63,975 bases of DNA, filler included, from Lenisia limosa (GCA_001655205.1; 13 parts of 13 records of this genome joined end to end with filler, not necessarily neighbours in it); one strand, 5' to 3'; shown: positions 22,618 through 30,178, counted from the first letter of the whole stretch. The notes: generated by a model not told the origin, from the sequence alone. Numbers and translations: made by a program.

Positions 22618-25600
22618 CCATCCATCCATCCAACCTGATACGTCATCATCGGCTCAAGGCCTCCGCAGATACATTCACAGATGTCCGTTTCCGCAACTAC
22701 ACCCCAGGATTCCTTTTTGATTTCAACCAGATATCTGAAAAGGTCAGAGACAGCCTTGGAAAAAAACCTCACAAGATGTTGAAAGCAATGTAATTAAGAA
22801 ATCCCACCTCCCCCTTAATTCTGATAAAGGCTTGCCGGACCGTTTAACTAACAATAGCCAACTCTCAAGGGTNNNNNNNNNNNNNNNNNNNNNNNNNNNN
22901 NNNNNNNNNNNNNNNNNNNNNNNNNNNNNNNNNNNNNNNNNNNNNNNNNNNNNNNNNNNNNNNNNNNNNNNNNNNNNNNNNNNNNNNNNNNNNNNNNNNN
23001 NNNNNNNNNNNNNNNNNNNNNNNNNNNNNNNNNNNNNNNNNNGCGGTGAGGTGCACGATTAAAAGCATTGAAGGAGAAAGTGAAATCATATCGCACTACC
23101 CCCACCCCCCACCTTGAGAGACGTTGGATCCGGGGATGTGACAGCAGGTCTCATGGGGGCAGAAGGGGGGCCTAGGGTGCACACCTAAATTGAGTGAATT
23201 GCAATAGTAGGCTGTGTGATAGTGTTTAGTGAGTATATGGCATTGATGGTCAAGAGTGATTTGATGGTATGGCATAGTACAGTGAAAACAAACCTTGACA
23301 GGACGAGTGGTTGGGGACACCGCTCCGTTCTCACCGATGGTCGAAACCCTGAGCTACATGGGGTGACACCATATGCATATGATATACTATGTAGTACATG
23401 TACATAATGCTATTACAATGAGTATTAAATGGTGTGGCTATAAGCAATGAAAGCTGTAGAATCTGCGAAACTAAAGAGACACAAAGCAAGACAATTTTAA
23501 TCTGAGGTTAATAGAGAGGGATGGGTATTGCAGCATATTCCTTAATTCCACCTGAACCATACCCTACCTGTACAGCCTGGCCGGACTGGAACCCATCAAT
23601 CAAGGCTGTTACCTCCACCTGGCTGGACGTTTGGTCTAATTCCACTGGCTCAATCAGCTCCCACGCCCGGCCTGAGGATATCAAAGAAATAAACAGCAAG
23701 TGATCAAGGAACAGAATAAACTTGATTACAAACATATCCCCTCGGACCTTTCAGAGACCTGTCGGCTTCGACTTTGAAGGACAAATTATACTGCGACAAG
23801 AGACCCTGGAAAGTGAGTAATAACCATTTGTCTGGATTTCTTGCATGTCAATGGTGGATAAGGCTATGTTGAAAAAAGGATCAACTTTGTAGTAATAATA
23901 GTCACCCCCCCCCCTCTTTGATCCTNNNNNNNNNNNNNNNNNNNNNNNNNNNNNNNNNNNNNNNNNNNNNNNNNNNNNNNNNNNNNNNNNNNNNNNNNNN
24001 NNNNNNNNNNNNNNNNNNNNNNNNNNNNNNNNNNNNNNNNNNTGATAGTGCTACATGTGACTTTGATGATCGACAGGTGATCAGGCTTTGGCGGAGCGGC
24101 TGAAGGGTCAAAAACAAGGCAAAGGGAGACAGGACACTCAGTATTTGATTAAACGTTATCTCCAAGAAAATAGCCCACTTTTTTTAATAACAGGAACTGG
24201 GGGTGCGCGGGTCGGAATTGCTGCAACACTACTTTCAGCCTATTTGTTTACTACCAAAGATGGAGGAATCAGAGTGATACGAACAAAACAGATAAATTGT
24301 CCTATAACAACGGTACACCCCCACCTGTTTCAAACTGACGTAACAGTCATCATCAATCTGACCCGAGATTCCGAGCCATCTGAAGCCCTCATCATCCAAA
24401 CCCTCGGGTACTGCGGGGGACCCAACCTTGTATGTTCCTGGGGGGGGGGGGGNNNNNNNNNNNNNNNNNNNNNNNNNNNNNNNNNNNNNNNNNNNNNNNN
24501 NNNNNNNNNNNCCTTTAAATGTCAGAATAAAAGAATATGATATCCCCCCCCTCCCTACCCAAAGCCACGGAAGGGGACGAAGCCCAGAAGCCGCCAAATT
24601 GGTTTGCAGACAGGTAGTTGTTGGAGCCGCTCACCACCTGGAGCATGAGACCTTGATCTCACCCGGGGGATATCTGATTATCTTTACTTTCAATTTAATA
24701 TTAATCTAGCAACCCGGCTACCTTGACGGAAGTACCCGGGAGCAATACACCCGCAGTGCCCGCCCTCGTGTAGGCGGGGACATCGCATGATAACACGGGT
24801 ACAAGCTCAGTTGACAAACACGATATAACTCCTCCCTTGGTGATGAAAACGGAACATGTGAAAATATATGTATTACACAAACAAAACAGCAAGGTGCATG
24901 AGGAAAGAATAATCATCTGTCTCCTGCCTGATGTTGAGGCTAATAATCAAAATAAAAAATAAAAACAACTCCCAAACAATTCTGCAATTTTGTTTTTCAA
25001 AAAGTTGCCATTCACCCACCTCATTGGGGTTGAAGATGGTATTGAGGTTGTCAATGACATCTTGGTCCAAGGGAGTCGGGCCTCTGGAGGGGGTGAGATG
25101 AAAATGCAAACAATCAAAACCAGCTCTACTGAATACACATTCCAGAGGGGAGCAGTAAGCATGGGGCTTTTTTGATAACTAAGCCTCAACCTGAGAGGCC
25201 TGGGCTTCTCATTCGAGTTGCAATGGTGTAATTATCAAATTGATTTGTAAGAATCTTGAATAAAGAAGCCCTGTCTTACATTATGACCTCAACGCCAATA
25301 GTCTAGCCAATACCCCCACAAACACTTTCAGAGTACCGACCAAGCTCATTTGTGCGGATGCCTCAAAACATTCCGGAGTCTGTGCATAAGACGAGCTTCG
25401 ATAATGGATTGCAATATCCTATCGATATTGTTTTATTATTCTAACTATGGTTGCTGCGATACACTTTTTATATCTCAAATATATAGAGAGACGAGAAATA
25501 AAACAAGGTTGTATCTGGCCGAAGCCAATACATAGACACTATCAAATTATAATAAATTAGATACCCTATGTTACACGGTGACATTCCATCCAGAAACACA

Positions 25601-27896
25601 CAGAGTAAATACCAAAGATACACCGCGATTTCTATTGAAAGCAGCCCACACCATCCAACCGTTGAGATTTGCTGTCCAAGCTCAGTGGCTACAGCCAAAA
25701 CGGACGGCTGGTAGTACTAAAGCGCAGTAAGTGGGAGATAATATATCCATCTCGTCTCAACAGTATTAGACTATCATTTTTTGATAAGTATCACTGTAAC
25801 ATCCACCGATATAACACAGGCAACTGCAAGAATTTGGATGAACACTAAATACCAGAAAATCCGAGGCACAACCGGGAGCAAACCTCGACAAGAGGGGCCA
25901 GGTTCTGCGGTTCACAAGAGGAGTAAAGCGTGAGGCAGCACCCCGACCTAAAGCACGGTCCGGCCACATGTGTCAGGAAGTAGGCCGAAATCGTTGGGCA
26001 GAAAGCTAGACAACTTCCTGCAAGGGGTGAGGATGCGCTGTCCTAGGTTCTAAGGTGCAGGGTTCTTCGGTGTTAACTGTCTCAGACATGACCCCACCAT
26101 TAGTCGGATAGTTACATGCAGTGTCGTACACCAGACTGGCGCCAGCAGCAATACTGTAGTGGCTGTGTGCAATTGGAGTGAGAGGGTCGTCAACCGCGAA
26201 GGTCACGAGAGCAGTTTGGTTCCTTGTCAGGGTAGGGAACGTGTCCTATTGCGGTGAGGTCTAAAAGACACTGTAGCAATTCTGATGATAGCCAACCCAA
26301 AACAATACCTTGTCAACGTTTTGCTTGAGCCACTCCGCGGCACTGAATGTAACAGTTTTTTCAGGAGCGCCCGAGGCACCAGTCACGTCTAAAAAAAGTC
26401 AGTATTTTCAGGCCTCCAACATACCACTCGTATTAGTATTTTTACATATGACATAGTACGATATTTACTTTAGTAGATGATATGCATATCGTATAATATT
26501 ATATTATATCATATCGTATCATAATATATACATGTATATATACATATGATATATAAATTATCTAGCTTGTGGCAAGAGTTGAATGATGTGGCCTCTGACC
26601 CCCACCAACCCGGGAGAAGCACCAAGCGCTGCACCCCAGGACACAACACAGGAACCTGCGAGGTGAAAAGAGAAAGGTCAATTGGGGATAATGCAGTTGA
26701 TGTTTATTACAAAGGAATATTCATTTTTGATAAGTCGCACTGCCCAACACTTGCACCACAGGTGAAGTGGCGTTAAATACGGAAGACCCCCCCCCCCTAC
26801 ATGGCCCAAACCGGCTTCACCAATGATAGCAGATGAACACTCNNNNNNNNNNNNNNNNNNNNNNNNNCTCTGAATCTGGGCTTGCACTGTTTCAGACGGA
26901 GCAGCAACGTCAATGAGCATAGGAATGCATTCTGAGGGGGGAGGGGTGACAAATGAGCTTTGGGGTCTCTGATACAGGTCATTCCACAGATGTCGTCCAC
27001 TCACTCTCACACCTTTCAGGATCCTTTACACACCCACTCACCAGTTTGTATGAGGCCGAAAATGGCCATGAGTGCGATAAAGGATCCATCAGATATGACA
27101 GCCACCCGATCACCTCGTTTGAACCTTAGGTGTGAGGGTTATGAGTTCGGGTACATCTTCAAACATTATCTGACAATATGATGGTCTTGTAATTCACGAT
27201 AAATGGTACTTTTTACTTTCAAAAGAGATAGGATAAATAGCAGATGCACTTCATCTCCAAGCCCTCTCTGTTCACTTTGTCCAATATCTCAAATCAATTT
27301 GATTGGTACCTCCAATAGGTCATTTCACCTTCCTCGCCAAAACAATTAGCACCCTCCCTTTACCCCATACCCGTTTGATGAAAGACCCTTGCTGATCTAA
27401 AATGTAAGAACGGAATTGCATTTTATTAAAGCGGCAAAAGCGTGTCAGAACAAACAGGGACTATTTCTGGAATTTGATTGTAAAGGGAAACATTACAACT
27501 TCACATTGCGTGGGTCAATATATATCAAAGAAGAGACAAAAGAGTGAGAATCCTCTTCTCAAATATAAAAATTCGCTATTTAAAGGGCTGATGAAAGAGA
27601 TACAAGATATGTAATTTAGCGACAAATATTTATAAAAAACATATTTCAAAATTGACGTAGCCAGAAGTGAAATGACCATCTTGCCTACCTTCTTGATCAT
27701 TTTCCTGGTATCTGCAAGAGTATGCTGTTCAGCAGACAGCCCATCGCATCCTACAATCGTGTTGGGATCTATGAGAGTTCAGTGGAGAAGGGAGGGCAAT
27801 CAGCTTACCGAGGCTGTTGCCATCCTGAGAGAAAAAATACGAGAGAATGTCACAATCTGGCAGGATAGAGTCGTCGTAGGGGGATCGAAACGACAT
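22618..27896 (-). CDS. Degenerate 4-coumarate-CoA-ligase/luciferase-like adenylation (AMP-binding) domain fused to at least two fibronectin type III domains; 3' partial
   Basis: Spliced product starts MSFRSPYDDSILPDCDILSYFF. It continues ISKGLSSNGFKRGDRVAVISDG, CLAFCP, STELVPVLS..RAGTAGVLLPGTSVKVV, NQFGGFWASSPSVALG and LDDEGFRWLGISGQIDDDCYV, collinear with ANL enzymes. Then come FN3 segments APPKPDHLSIIKVTCSTI, LRVSTIGENGAVS and YLVEIKKESWGVVAETDICECICGGLEPMMTYQ. Confidence 0.75.
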
Positions 27897-28501
27897 TTTA
27901 AAAGGGATTTGGGATTAAAGTTCACTAGTTCAGAGTAATACTGCTGTAGATAACGCTAAATTATACCAGTGATAGCAAATAACACGGCTTTTACCGAATC
28001 TTATCGCTTAAAGGAGAGTTATCGGGGAAACTGTCCCATCGATAAACCCAAAGAAGGAAATTTTGCTCAAATAATAATATCAACTATTTCAGTAGTATAC
28101 CAAATGTTGAGTAAACTTTACAGACAAATGTAGAATGGCCTAAAAAAAAGACATGAAAAAGAGCTTGAAAAGTGGGCAGAGGTAAAAAAAAACATCAAGC
28201 GGAGAATCGAACCTACAGTTTCTGAAACATTGCTGAAAGATTGAAATAGCTGGTGAGTCATTACTTCATTTATCTTGATAAAAAAATACTGGGTTGTCAT
28301 GGTCATGGTTAAACCTGACCGATGGGCCATCTTCCAGAAGAATGCCTGACAAAAAAAAAAAAAAAAAACNNNNNNNNNNNNNNNNNNNNNNNNNNNNNNN
28401 NNNNNNNNNNNNNNNNNNNNNNNNNNNNNNNCTCCACAATCATGCCACCATATCACCTAACAGAACCATTTCACCATAGAACCACAGATATTCATTATCG
28501 C

Positions 28502-30178
28502 TTAGGCTGTCTTGTCAAAGGTCCAAAGCATAGCCGTATTCTCGACAATGGAGGCGCAGTCTTCACATGGCTGGAAGTGCTGGCGGAAGAGGTCGTACTC
28601 TAAGCATTTAGGGGTTATTTAGAATGGATTCAGACAGTTCTCAGAAGCCAACCCACCTTTAGAAAGGGTAGTGGCAAACACACCAGAGTCGTCAGTGCAA
28701 AGCGCAACCTGTGGGAAGTGACAACAAGTAAACTTCAACATCTTCACAAGTCTCCTTGGAAATTTGATCTTATCTCTGAGAAATTTCAAGAGAGGAGAGA
28801 GAAGTTTGTCTATTCCAATATTACTATGTAAAGAAATGCGTTCGAACATCACCCTCACCTGGATGCCTGCCTCAAATACTTCGGGAAGATGATGGGTCGA
28901 CAGGTCGCCAACCTTCTGAACGCGTCAAAAAGTCACAAAAATATATAAAGTAGAGTGTGTAATTAAGAAATGTAAGACAATACCCCCTTCGGACCTTCAC
29001 TGAGTCGGTGTAGAGGTTACTTGAGAGACAGACCTCCAGACACACTCGCCCCTCTCTTGCTTCCGCTTTGGGCAATATCGAACAGAACTCGCACTCTGAC
29101 GGGTAAACAACAGTAAAAAAAACACATCATTCATCTCAATATTGTGGAAGTAATTGACACAGCATTGCAAGTTACCTACTTTGCTTATCTGAGTTGACAT
29201 GGCCATGGCCGAGAGATTTCAACATTTCCCATGCCTTGGGACCAAGGTAGCACCCTAGTTGATTAATAACGCTGGAACACAAAGCTGATTGTGGAACAAG
29301 CTATTAAAAATCAGCACCTTTGATAAATTGACATTGATTCGTCCTTTAAGTTTAACATTATTGGATATTGGTCCCCAACAGAGAAGTTTCTTAACCCTAC
29401 CATGTGCAAGTCTGACAGTGTTGCTGATGTCTTTTGCGGTCATTTGTTCAGCAAAAGCGATGATCGATTCTGTTTCCTGGAGAATGGTAGAGAAAATGCC
29501 GCAGAGCTATGTAGACAAAAATCAATATCCCTTATAGTCACAGATGAGACGGCTTCGGGCTGAGCCCTTTGTTTTTGTTTCAATTTCTCATTTCAGCTTC
29601 CGACATTATTCATACCTGCTGGTTCTCAACTTCAGCGAAGTGCATTGAAAGACCCAACCCAGCCTCGTACGCCTTGGTTAATGGCTGTGTTTGGTCAATT
29701 GGATGGGACATTGGATCAGCACCAATGTAACAAAATAGCACCAACAACCCAAATACCCCGAAGAAGGTGCTTGCAGTACCGAGAGCTGGATTGCCTAGAA
29801 GATCAAATATGAGATTGAAATGTTAATGATGCCAGTTGCACCCCCCCCCCCAACCGGAGAGGTCCACTCCAACAATGAACCCTGGCATAGTCAGCGCCAA
29901 GTCCACAACGGCATAAGCCTGGTAACAATAAATCAAAAACATACCGAAATGAGTAATAGTGCAACTGCCATGACTGTCCTTTCTCTATCACGCTTTGATG
30001 TTTTCCCTTGATACAGCAATAAAAATTGGACAAGGTATTTTCTGTCATTTCTCTTTCCTCTACTTCGTCCATTATTAGCATATTCTCCCTACTCAATATG
30101 ACATCTCATTCTAATCCCCTCGTGTAACCTGTTCTTCAGACATTCTGCGGTCAATCGAGAGGATCAAACGGACGGTGG
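28502..30178 (-). CDS. ADAL: Adenosine deaminase-like protein (N6-methyl-AMP deaminase type), 5' partial
   Basis: Exons join as TVRLILSIDRR..GVDLSGNP..GLSMHFAEVENQQE..RLAHG..LEVCLSSN..VALCTDDSGVFATTLSKEY..*. The CTDDxGVF.T.LS.EY motif is the ADAL/MAPDA signature. Confidence 0.88.

Follow-up and report, generated by a model that had tools for sequence, protein, structure and literature searches.

The enzymes of the ANL superfamily are two-subdomain machines whose C-terminal subdomain rotates, and adenylation by these enzymes requires a P-loop, the aspartate of the TGD motif and a lysine in the C-terminal subdomain. One protein, DIP2 (disco-interacting protein 2), combines a DMAP1-binding domain with two complete FAAL-like domains, each having both subdomains. 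Two reports describe DIP2 as a eukaryotic protein with tandem, divergent fatty-acyl-AMP-ligase-like ANL domains and a regulatory lipid role (PMC9342972, PMC12055004). A literature search for an architecture that joins an ANL N-subdomain to FN3 repeats found nothing relevant.

We analyzed a gene of Lenisia limosa (GCA_001655205.1) that lies at positions 22618 to 27896 of a 63,975-nucleotide stretch, here called the window, in which 13 parts of 13 records of this genome are joined end to end with filler. Judged from its sequence, the gene probably encodes a genuine ANL-derived domain that lacks catalytic activity and is fused to repeats of the FN3 type.

Gene structure and assembly

The gene is intron-rich and eukaryotic, and it runs off its scaffold piece at 22618, so that its C-terminal end is cut away. 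We modeled the first part on the minus strand as 14 exons that are bordered by GT..AG and agree in phase, extending from 27896 to 24325 (~417 codons). Exon 1 (27809..27896; donor TCG/gtaagc) starts with the ATG at 27896, has an in-frame stop just upstream, and encodes an acidic N-terminus beginning MSFRSPYDDSILPDCDILSYFF. This N-terminus (FRSP..D..ILP...ILSYFF) may resemble the start of 4CL and 4CL-like proteins. By eye, it has no hydrophobic, signal-like stretch, in agreement with the first-pass annotation, which had seen no signal peptide. Exon 2 (27689..27750; ttgtag/ ... /gtaggc) is phase compatible with exon 1 and is followed by the 26-nt exon 3 (27371..27396; ttttag/ ... /gtatgg), exon 4 (27042..27124), exon 5 (26801..26931) and exon 6 (26610..26655). 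The remaining exons of this tract are exon 7 (26309..26388; codon-usage log-likelihood ratio +16.6), exon 8 (26132..26245), exon 9 (25884..26042; 53 codons), exon 10 (25622..25716; phase 2 donor GGT/gtatct), exon 11 (25020..25083), exon 12 (24722..24835), exon 13 (24559..24637) and exon 14 (24325..24437). Including the downstream exons described below, codon usage was coding-like in 20 of the 21 modeled exons in a leave-one-out analysis, and the FN3-like exons had the same usage as the ANL exons. The only sequencing run containing the stretch is probably the one it came from, and in the single RNA (polyA) run of that study, 2% of the sampled words were present.

There are four assembly gaps within the gene (26843-26867, 24453-24511, 23926-24042 and 22873-23042). 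Given these gaps and the homopolymer runs at their edges, indels or a mis-join are possible. The first gap splits exon 5, each flank of which is open when read in the frame that the neighboring exon sets. As written (25 N), the gap leaves the flanks in frame, and because the alignment diagonal (see below) shifts only from 10 to 13-14 across it, a few residues at most would be concealed. The second gap falls in the intron between exons 13 and 14. There, compatible phases (1+2) and a diagonal moving from 16 to 15 indicate that no exon is concealed. The other two gaps lie in the FN3-like part.

Similarity to the ANL large subdomain

We built a profile from seven E. coli ANL proteins and ran hmmsearch exon by exon. 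There were five non-trivial matches (exons 4, 9, 12, 13 and 14), and all five fell on one diagonal, with offsets of 10-16. The strongest single match to ANL proteins was exon 4, which reads KRGDRVAVISDGSFIALMAIFGLIQ and covers the motif A2 region (profile 72-96, 4.6 bits; FadD 72-96, 5.0 bits). Exon 9 corresponds to the A4 region (profile 250-272, offset 14), exon 12 to the A5 place (profile 339-369, tE...iGlplpgvevk, offset 16), exon 13 to the A6 region (profile 373-393, offset 16) and exon 14 to the A7 place (profile 410-422, offset 15). The match is colinear from the A2 to the A7 region with spacing kept. In a shuffle control (n = 200), no more than two matches fell in one band. The absence of a five-match diagonal from the 200 shuffles supports descent of the first ~417 residues from the large N-terminal subdomain of ANL enzymes of the acyl-CoA synthetase/4-coumarate-CoA ligase/luciferase kind. 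The homology to an ANL N-domain over about 400 aa, which the first-pass annotation had described as 4CL/luciferase-type, is thereby supported.

Scans with individual exons did not recover this relationship. None of nine ANL exons scanned singly had a Pfam match to AMP-binding at E ≤ 10, and PDB sequence searches with exons 1, 4, 9 and 14 returned no ANL chain. Exons of a neighboring ADA-like gene were also without Pfam matches, indicating that single-exon scans are insensitive. A VinK_C match from the exon-wise Pfam scan (E 0.088) was dismissed as chance.

Loss of catalytic motifs

The motifs that bind nucleotide and support catalysis in ANL enzymes were examined at their places in the alignment. 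The A3 P-loop ([ST][ST]G[ST][ST]GxPKG) is absent. Its place, in exon 8 and on the common diagonal, reads T-F-A-V-D-D-P-L-T-P (26203-26174), with all ten positions changed and every glycine and the lysine gone. Over the longer stretch TFAVDDPLTPIAHSH (26203-26159), ANL enzymes have T-S-G-T-T-G-x-P-K-G-V-x-x-T-H. Residues 4-30 of exon 8 align with CaiC 168-196, placing FAVDDPLTP under FTSGTTSRPKG. The A5 motif YGxTE is not intact: ISCLSTE (24826-24806) retains the T and E and lacks the Y and G. At A7 ([ST]GD), the sequence is WLGI (24378-24367) where W-x-T/S-G-D is expected; the aspartate is gone, and in the alignment of exon 14 with EntE 405-427, SGD stands over LGI, and the profile has TGD there. 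These motif-level alignments bear out the reported erosion: the P-loop has neither its glycines nor its lysine, and TGD has no aspartate. The strings quoted in the first-pass annotation all occur on the minus strand where it had placed them, and the replacements at the P-loop, YGxTE and TGD are as it described. No canonical A3, A5, A8 or A10 motif was present in any of the six frames of the read letters, nor was there an alternative motif-bearing exon; the possibility that alternative exons restore the P-loop or TGD motif had been raised earlier, and none was found in any frame.

Similarity to ANL enzymes ends at the hinge. The end of exon 14 (…DDDCYVSLKQ) corresponds to profile position 432, one residue before the hinge R at 433. 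Among the minus-strand pieces from 24324 to 22618, in the read letters, there was no match to the C-subdomain (profile 433-540), consistent with the earlier claim that this subdomain is missing. Because the chain departs from the ANL fold at the hinge, it lacks, in the read letters, the C-terminal subdomain that rotates and, with it, the catalytic lysine. The protein would be unable to adenylate any substrate. The protein might instead still be an active enzyme that uses a non-canonical nucleotide site, with a C-subdomain supplied in trans or encoded past the end of the scaffold. Retention of the A5 T and E and the truncation of the gene at 22618 are in keeping with this, but the P-loop, the TGD aspartate and the C-subdomain lysine are all missing and the chain exits the fold at the hinge, and we regard continued activity as very improbable.

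The same losses could be neutral if the ANL-like tract is an unprocessed pseudogene undergoing decay, or if the whole locus is a relic. The missing catalytic motifs, the phase conflict at the junction described below and the failure to find relatives in searches with single exons would fit such decay. Against it, the 14 exons contain no stop or frameshift over ~417 codons despite divergence across the entire P-loop, although splice sites were picked to keep the frame and this choice could mask a frameshift. The exons also differ from the introns in GC content (0.535 versus 0.396), the codon-usage log-likelihood ratio is above zero in 14 of 15 ANL exon pieces, and splice donors are well preserved, mostly scoring 8-11 with the gene's own splice-site matrix. 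That the whole P-loop was replaced while so long a frame stayed free of stops suggests that the protein has been under selection and is not decaying, and we consider a pseudogene quite unlikely.

FN3-like exons and the junction

Downstream of exon 14 we modeled six FN3-like exons, on the same strand as the ANL exons and in mutually compatible phases. The first of them, exon a (24043..24099; acceptor cttcag/, score 5.8; log-likelihood ratio +6.4), encodes APPKPDHLSIIKVTCSTI (24097-24044), corresponding to strand A, and is truncated after 18 codons by the gap at 23926-24042. Exons b (23748..23805; GLLSQYNLSFKVEADRSLK) and d (23294..23353; LRVSTIGENGAVSPTTRPVK) were placed by the model and codon usage. 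Between them, exon c (23568..23671; log-likelihood ratio +13.7) reads RAWELIE...TSSQVEVTALIDGFQSGQAVQ. Exon e (23113..23184) would encode the linker between repeats and the beginning of the second repeat (…GPPSAPMRPAVTSPDPTSLK), and is followed by the gap at 22873-23042. The exons on either side of this gap are of incompatible phase (0 versus 2), indicating that at least one exon is concealed, corresponding approximately to strand B of repeat 2. Exon f (22635..22734) reads YLVEIKKESWGVVAETD...GGLEPMMTYQ, after which the gene leaves the piece; within it, YLVEIKK...GLEPMMTYQ occupies 22733-22635 on the minus strand.

FN3 domains are marked by a tryptophan in strand B, a tyrosine in strand C, Leu-x-Pro-x-x-x-Tyr at E-F and a period of about 90 residues. 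By inspection, these exons carry FN3-like hallmarks at the places of strand C (Y-x-L-x-F and Y-L-V-E-I), of the E-F region (G-L-E-P-M-M-T-Y) and of the F-G region (R-V-S-T-I-G-E-N-G-A-V-S-P). In each repeat, the tryptophan of strand B would fall in one of the gaps (23926-24042 and 22873-23042), and each FN3-like domain is split across 4-5 exons of 18-34 codons. There was no Pfam match to fn3 (PF00041) in four exons scanned singly, including c and f. PDB searches by phmmer or hmmsearch with exon c, exon f and a two-row FN3 profile recovered no FN3 chain, only Ig CH3 chains (E 0.3-1.5), and an ESM Atlas search with exon f gave no match. From the hallmarks seen by inspection, we infer that at least two FN3-type beta-sandwich repeats follow the ANL part.

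How the two parts are joined is less straightforward. The top-scoring donor (exon 14, CAG/gtgggg, 10.9; 24325, phase 0) and the top acceptor (24099, phase 1) cannot be paired directly. Homopolymers lie nearby (G5 at 24323-24319 and A7 at 24185-24179), and a change of 1 nt in them would alter the junction model. A candidate linker exon, exon 15 (24179..24239, minus strand; 61 nt), would convert phase 0 to phase 1 and give a two-intron path that is in frame and free of stops. This exon, which exists in the model only, is GC-rich and encodes the proline-rich AESSVAAIPTRAPPVPVIKK. Its codon log-likelihood ratio in the frame used is +2.3, the best of the three frames, and its donor (AAA/gtgggc) scores 5.0; its acceptor (aaatag/GCT) is weak, with a score of -0.7, lower than that of any of the 18 acceptors used for training. 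Several other solutions were rejected: the acceptor at 24136 for its score (-5.7), a 42-nt exon at 24220-24179 because it keeps the wrong phase, and donors at 24363, 24345 and 24336 because conserved ANL sequence would be lost. The first-pass annotation had the frame passing from the ANL part into FN3 sequence. The shared strand and codon bias and the existence of an in-frame path agree with that description, and the phase conflict between the best donor and acceptor does not. In our model, the ANL exons would be spliced to the FN3-like exons either through a weak acceptor or across an assembly indel.

The phase conflict would also be in keeping with two adjacent transcription units, or a mis-scaffolded join, and with an ANL-derived gene that ends after exon 14. 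Read-through past the exon 14 donor does reach a stop, at ~24237, the scaffold is gappy, and no orthologue was found in the exhaustive search with exon 9. However, the 225-nt interval between exon 14 and exon a contains no ATG, making a separate FN3 gene unlikely, and the only AATAAA/ATTAAA-type hexamer in the interval (24188) falls within the candidate linker exon. We rejected extension of exon 14 by read-through to 24255, as the added sequence is intron-like in GC composition with a codon log-likelihood ratio of -8.4. In addition, exon 14 and exon a lie on one uninterrupted run of read letters (24043-24452), with a common strand and codon bias. Separate units or a mis-join are in our judgment unlikely. 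We favor, with somewhat better than even confidence, a single minus-strand eukaryotic gene cut by the scaffold end, in which a non-catalytic ANL-derived head would be followed by FN3-type repeats.

Searches for relatives

An exhaustive search of 1.84 billion representative proteins with exon 9 (53 residues) as the query found no true relative. One hit (P0001, E 6e-10) was spurious: it is a translated tandem repeat with nine matched stretches and scattered, meaningless Pfam matches. Exon 9 had no usable match in the ESM Atlas and none in JGI metagenomes. A word search with a 71-residue ORF around exon 12 returned nothing, and missed the query itself as well.

Discussion

A tentative reading, to which we give a little less than even weight, is that this gene represents a lineage-restricted family in which an ANL N-subdomain without nucleotide site or C-subdomain serves as a non-catalytic head that binds a ligand or partner, on an intracellular FN3 rod. 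The head would be retained as a folded binding module, and its partner could be a small carboxylate, a lipid ligand or another protein. The FN3 repeats would form a spacer rod bearing the head in the cytoplasm, a placement suggested by the lack of a signal peptide. If this is correct, an enzyme fold has been turned into a binding module, with FN3 repeats replacing the rotating subdomain and the ATP site erased, and a pseudoenzyme branch would be added to the ANL superfamily, in which few have been described. If the junction is an artefact, the locus is an ordinary one: a truncated, degenerate ANL paralogue beside an FN3 gene, in an assembly of low quality.

The N-subdomain is comparable, colinearly from A2 to A7, to ANL class I enzymes (PF00501), including E. 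coli FadD, FadK and CaiC, 4-coumarate-CoA ligases and firefly luciferase. In contrast to these enzymes, the Lenisia protein has neither the A3 P-loop nor the A7 aspartate, and half of A5 is lost. In the read letters it also lacks the hinge/A8, the C-terminal subdomain and the A10 lysine, and has FN3-like repeats instead.

The C-terminal part can be compared, by inspection, with intracellular FN3 scaffolds of the titin/twitchin and FNDC3 types. It would share with them the P-x-A-P-x-x-P start of a repeat, the strand C pattern Y-x-L/V, the C' tryptophan, and L-x-P-x-x-x-Y followed by R-V-x-x-x-G-x-N-G-x-x-S-P, as well as the lack of an N-terminal signal peptide. Unlike those scaffolds, the Lenisia gene has no kinase, Ig or other partner domain that we could see.

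The Lenisia protein and DIP2 are alike in that an ANL-derived module has been reused beyond classical acyl-CoA synthesis within a larger multidomain eukaryotic protein. They are set apart, by description, in that the Lenisia protein would consist of a single N-subdomain joined to FN3-like repeats.

Gene model and neighbourhood

The DNA at positions 22618-30178 is eukaryotic in character, with many short introns, and all of its coding sense lies on the minus strand. The last exons of an adenosine-deaminase or ADAL-like gene, cut by the edge of the piece, occupy 28503-30178 (minus strand, stop codon TAA at ~28503). We recognized motifs of this gene by eye (SMHFAEV, LGHGH, LEVCLSSNL and LCTDDSGVF), and residues 150-170, 202-218 and 237-268 of E. 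coli Add match three minus-strand pieces of it in the correct order. The start codon of the gene studied here, an ATG at 27896 on the minus strand, is ~600 nt past the deaminase-like gene. The spacer contains an assembly gap and a run of 20 T's (28370-28430 and flanks), and the promoter and 5' region of the gene are therefore incomplete.

The part of the gene that resembles adenylate-forming enzymes of the acyl-CoA synthetase/4CL/luciferase type (ANL) was modelled as 14 exons (E1-E14, 27896 to 24325) from open frames and GT..AG sites. The phases of all 14 exons are compatible end to end, and most donors score 8-11 with a matrix made from this gene's own splice sites. GC content is 0.535 in exons versus 0.396 in introns, and leave-one-out tests gave coding-like codon usage for 20 of the 21 exon pieces in the model. 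Every string quoted in the first-pass annotation was found where it had been placed. Intron 6 contains an AT-rich, low-complexity, partly palindromic stretch (~26460-26580).

Long G, C or T runs occur at 26786-26797, 24441-24452, 24546-24553, 23903-23912, 23095-23104, 28350-28369 and 29838-29848. Most assembly gaps have homopolymer runs at or near their edges, and the assembly seems to break at such runs, which makes single-base indels elsewhere plausible, for example in the A7 run at 24179-24185. The gap at 26843-26867 is inside exon 5; its flanks are in frame as written and the ANL alignment diagonal shifts only from 10 to 13-14, so the gap hides little, and continuity of exon 5 across it is modelled but unproven. 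The gap at 24453-24511, in the intron between E13 and E14, has compatible phases and moves the diagonal from 16 to 15.

ANL homology and loss of catalytic motifs

Pfam and PDB searches with the ANL exons taken singly gave no match for any exon. These negatives weigh little, because single exons are too short for library scans and Pfam likewise found none of the single exons of the neighbouring deaminase-like gene. We built an ANL profile from seven E. coli K-12 enzymes (FadD, CaiC, MenE, EntE, FadK, Acs and PrpE) and scored the peptides of all exons against it one at a time, without any filtering. Alignments of at least 10 residues were obtained for five exons only: E4 (profile positions 72-96), E9 (250-272), E12 (339-369), E13 (373-393) and E14 (410-422). 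All five fell on a single diagonal, with offsets of 10-16. In 200 within-exon shuffles there were at most two matches within one 10-residue band, and reversed peptides gave one match. This result supports both ANL homology and the exon model.

At the P-loop (A3), FAVDDPLTP was aligned beneath FTSGTTSRPKG of CaiC; CLSTE was beneath YGLTE (A5), and LGI beneath TGD/SGD (A7). The end of E14 corresponds to profile position 432, one short of the hinge arginine at 433. Canonical patterns for A3, A5, the hinge (A8) and the C-subdomain lysine (A10) were absent from all six frames of 22618-30178, and the C-subdomain part of the profile had no match downstream of E14 within the piece. The proposal of an eroded N-domain without a C-subdomain thus holds for the letters read, and descent from ANL enzymes with loss of the adenylation machinery is supported.

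FN3-like exons and the junction

Six exons follow on the same strand (24099 to 22635), with the same codon bias as the ANL exons and compatible phases wherever gaps permit a check. By inspection, a fibronectin type III (FN3) pattern was seen twice, with P-x-A-P-x-x-P starts, Y-x-L/V in strand C, tryptophan in C', L-x-P-x-x-x-Y and R-V-x-x-x-G-x-N-G-x-x-S-P. Searches of Pfam, PDB and Atlas with single FN3-like exons or a two-row profile gave no confirmation. If these exons are FN3, the strand B tryptophans would lie within gaps. We judge from inspection that they quite probably are. One gap, at 23926-24042, truncates the first of these exons; another, at 22873-23042, has incompatible phases on its flanks (0 and 2), so one exon or more must be hidden in it.

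The weak point of the gene model is the junction between the two parts. The best donor (24325, CAG|gtgggg, score 10.9) leaves the reading frame in phase 0, and the best acceptor (24099, cttcag|, score 5.8) requires phase 1. The frame-keeping single-intron junctions were all flawed, having poor sites, deleting conserved ANL sequence or, in one case, reading through a stretch that resembles an intron (codon log-likelihood ratio -8.4). In the best path, two introns (85 and 79 nt) flank a modelled 61-nt exon (24239-24179) that encodes AESSVAAIPTRAPPVPVIKK and includes the A7 run. This linker exon has a GC-rich core, is coding-like in that frame alone (log-likelihood ratio +2.3), and has a good donor (score 5.0) and a weak acceptor (score -0.7). 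A one-base error in a nearby homopolymer could instead account for the phase conflict; breakage of the assembly at such runs is clear. Alternatively, the two parts could be separate genes, but the 225-nt interval between E14 and the first FN3-like exon has no ATG, and both exons are on one unbroken block of letters (24043-24452). The earlier claim that the frame passes into FN3 sequence holds only in part; the best donor and the best acceptor are out of phase. Given the arguments for a single gene, the ANL part is probably, though not provenly, fused to FN3-type repeats.

Relatives and known systems

When exon 9 (53 residues) was searched exhaustively with HMMER against 1.84 billion representative proteins, the sole match was P0001 (664 residues, E 6e-10), which we rejected as a translated satellite of nine copies of a ~70-residue unit and no true relative; it attains this E value only because nine weak matches to the short query add up. 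Such translated satellites are a trap for searches with short queries. The search also missed the gene itself, indicating that proteins of this genome are absent from that library. No relative was found in a JGI metagenome scan with exon 9 or a word search with a 71-residue ORF around E12. With queries so short, orthologues below ~45% identity would be missed, and the absence of relatives is weakly supported.

The protein is a novel variant inside the known ANL superfamily. We lean slightly toward the full explanation, a non-catalytic ANL-derived head fused to FN3-type repeats, in which the head may act in binding on an FN3 scaffold. Its significance is limited by the poor assembly, the lack of detected orthologues and a splice join that is predicted only. 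The literature searched contained no description of an AMP-binding-plus-FN3 architecture. The nearest described reuse of ANL-type domains in a eukaryotic multidomain protein is DIP2 (PMC9342972).
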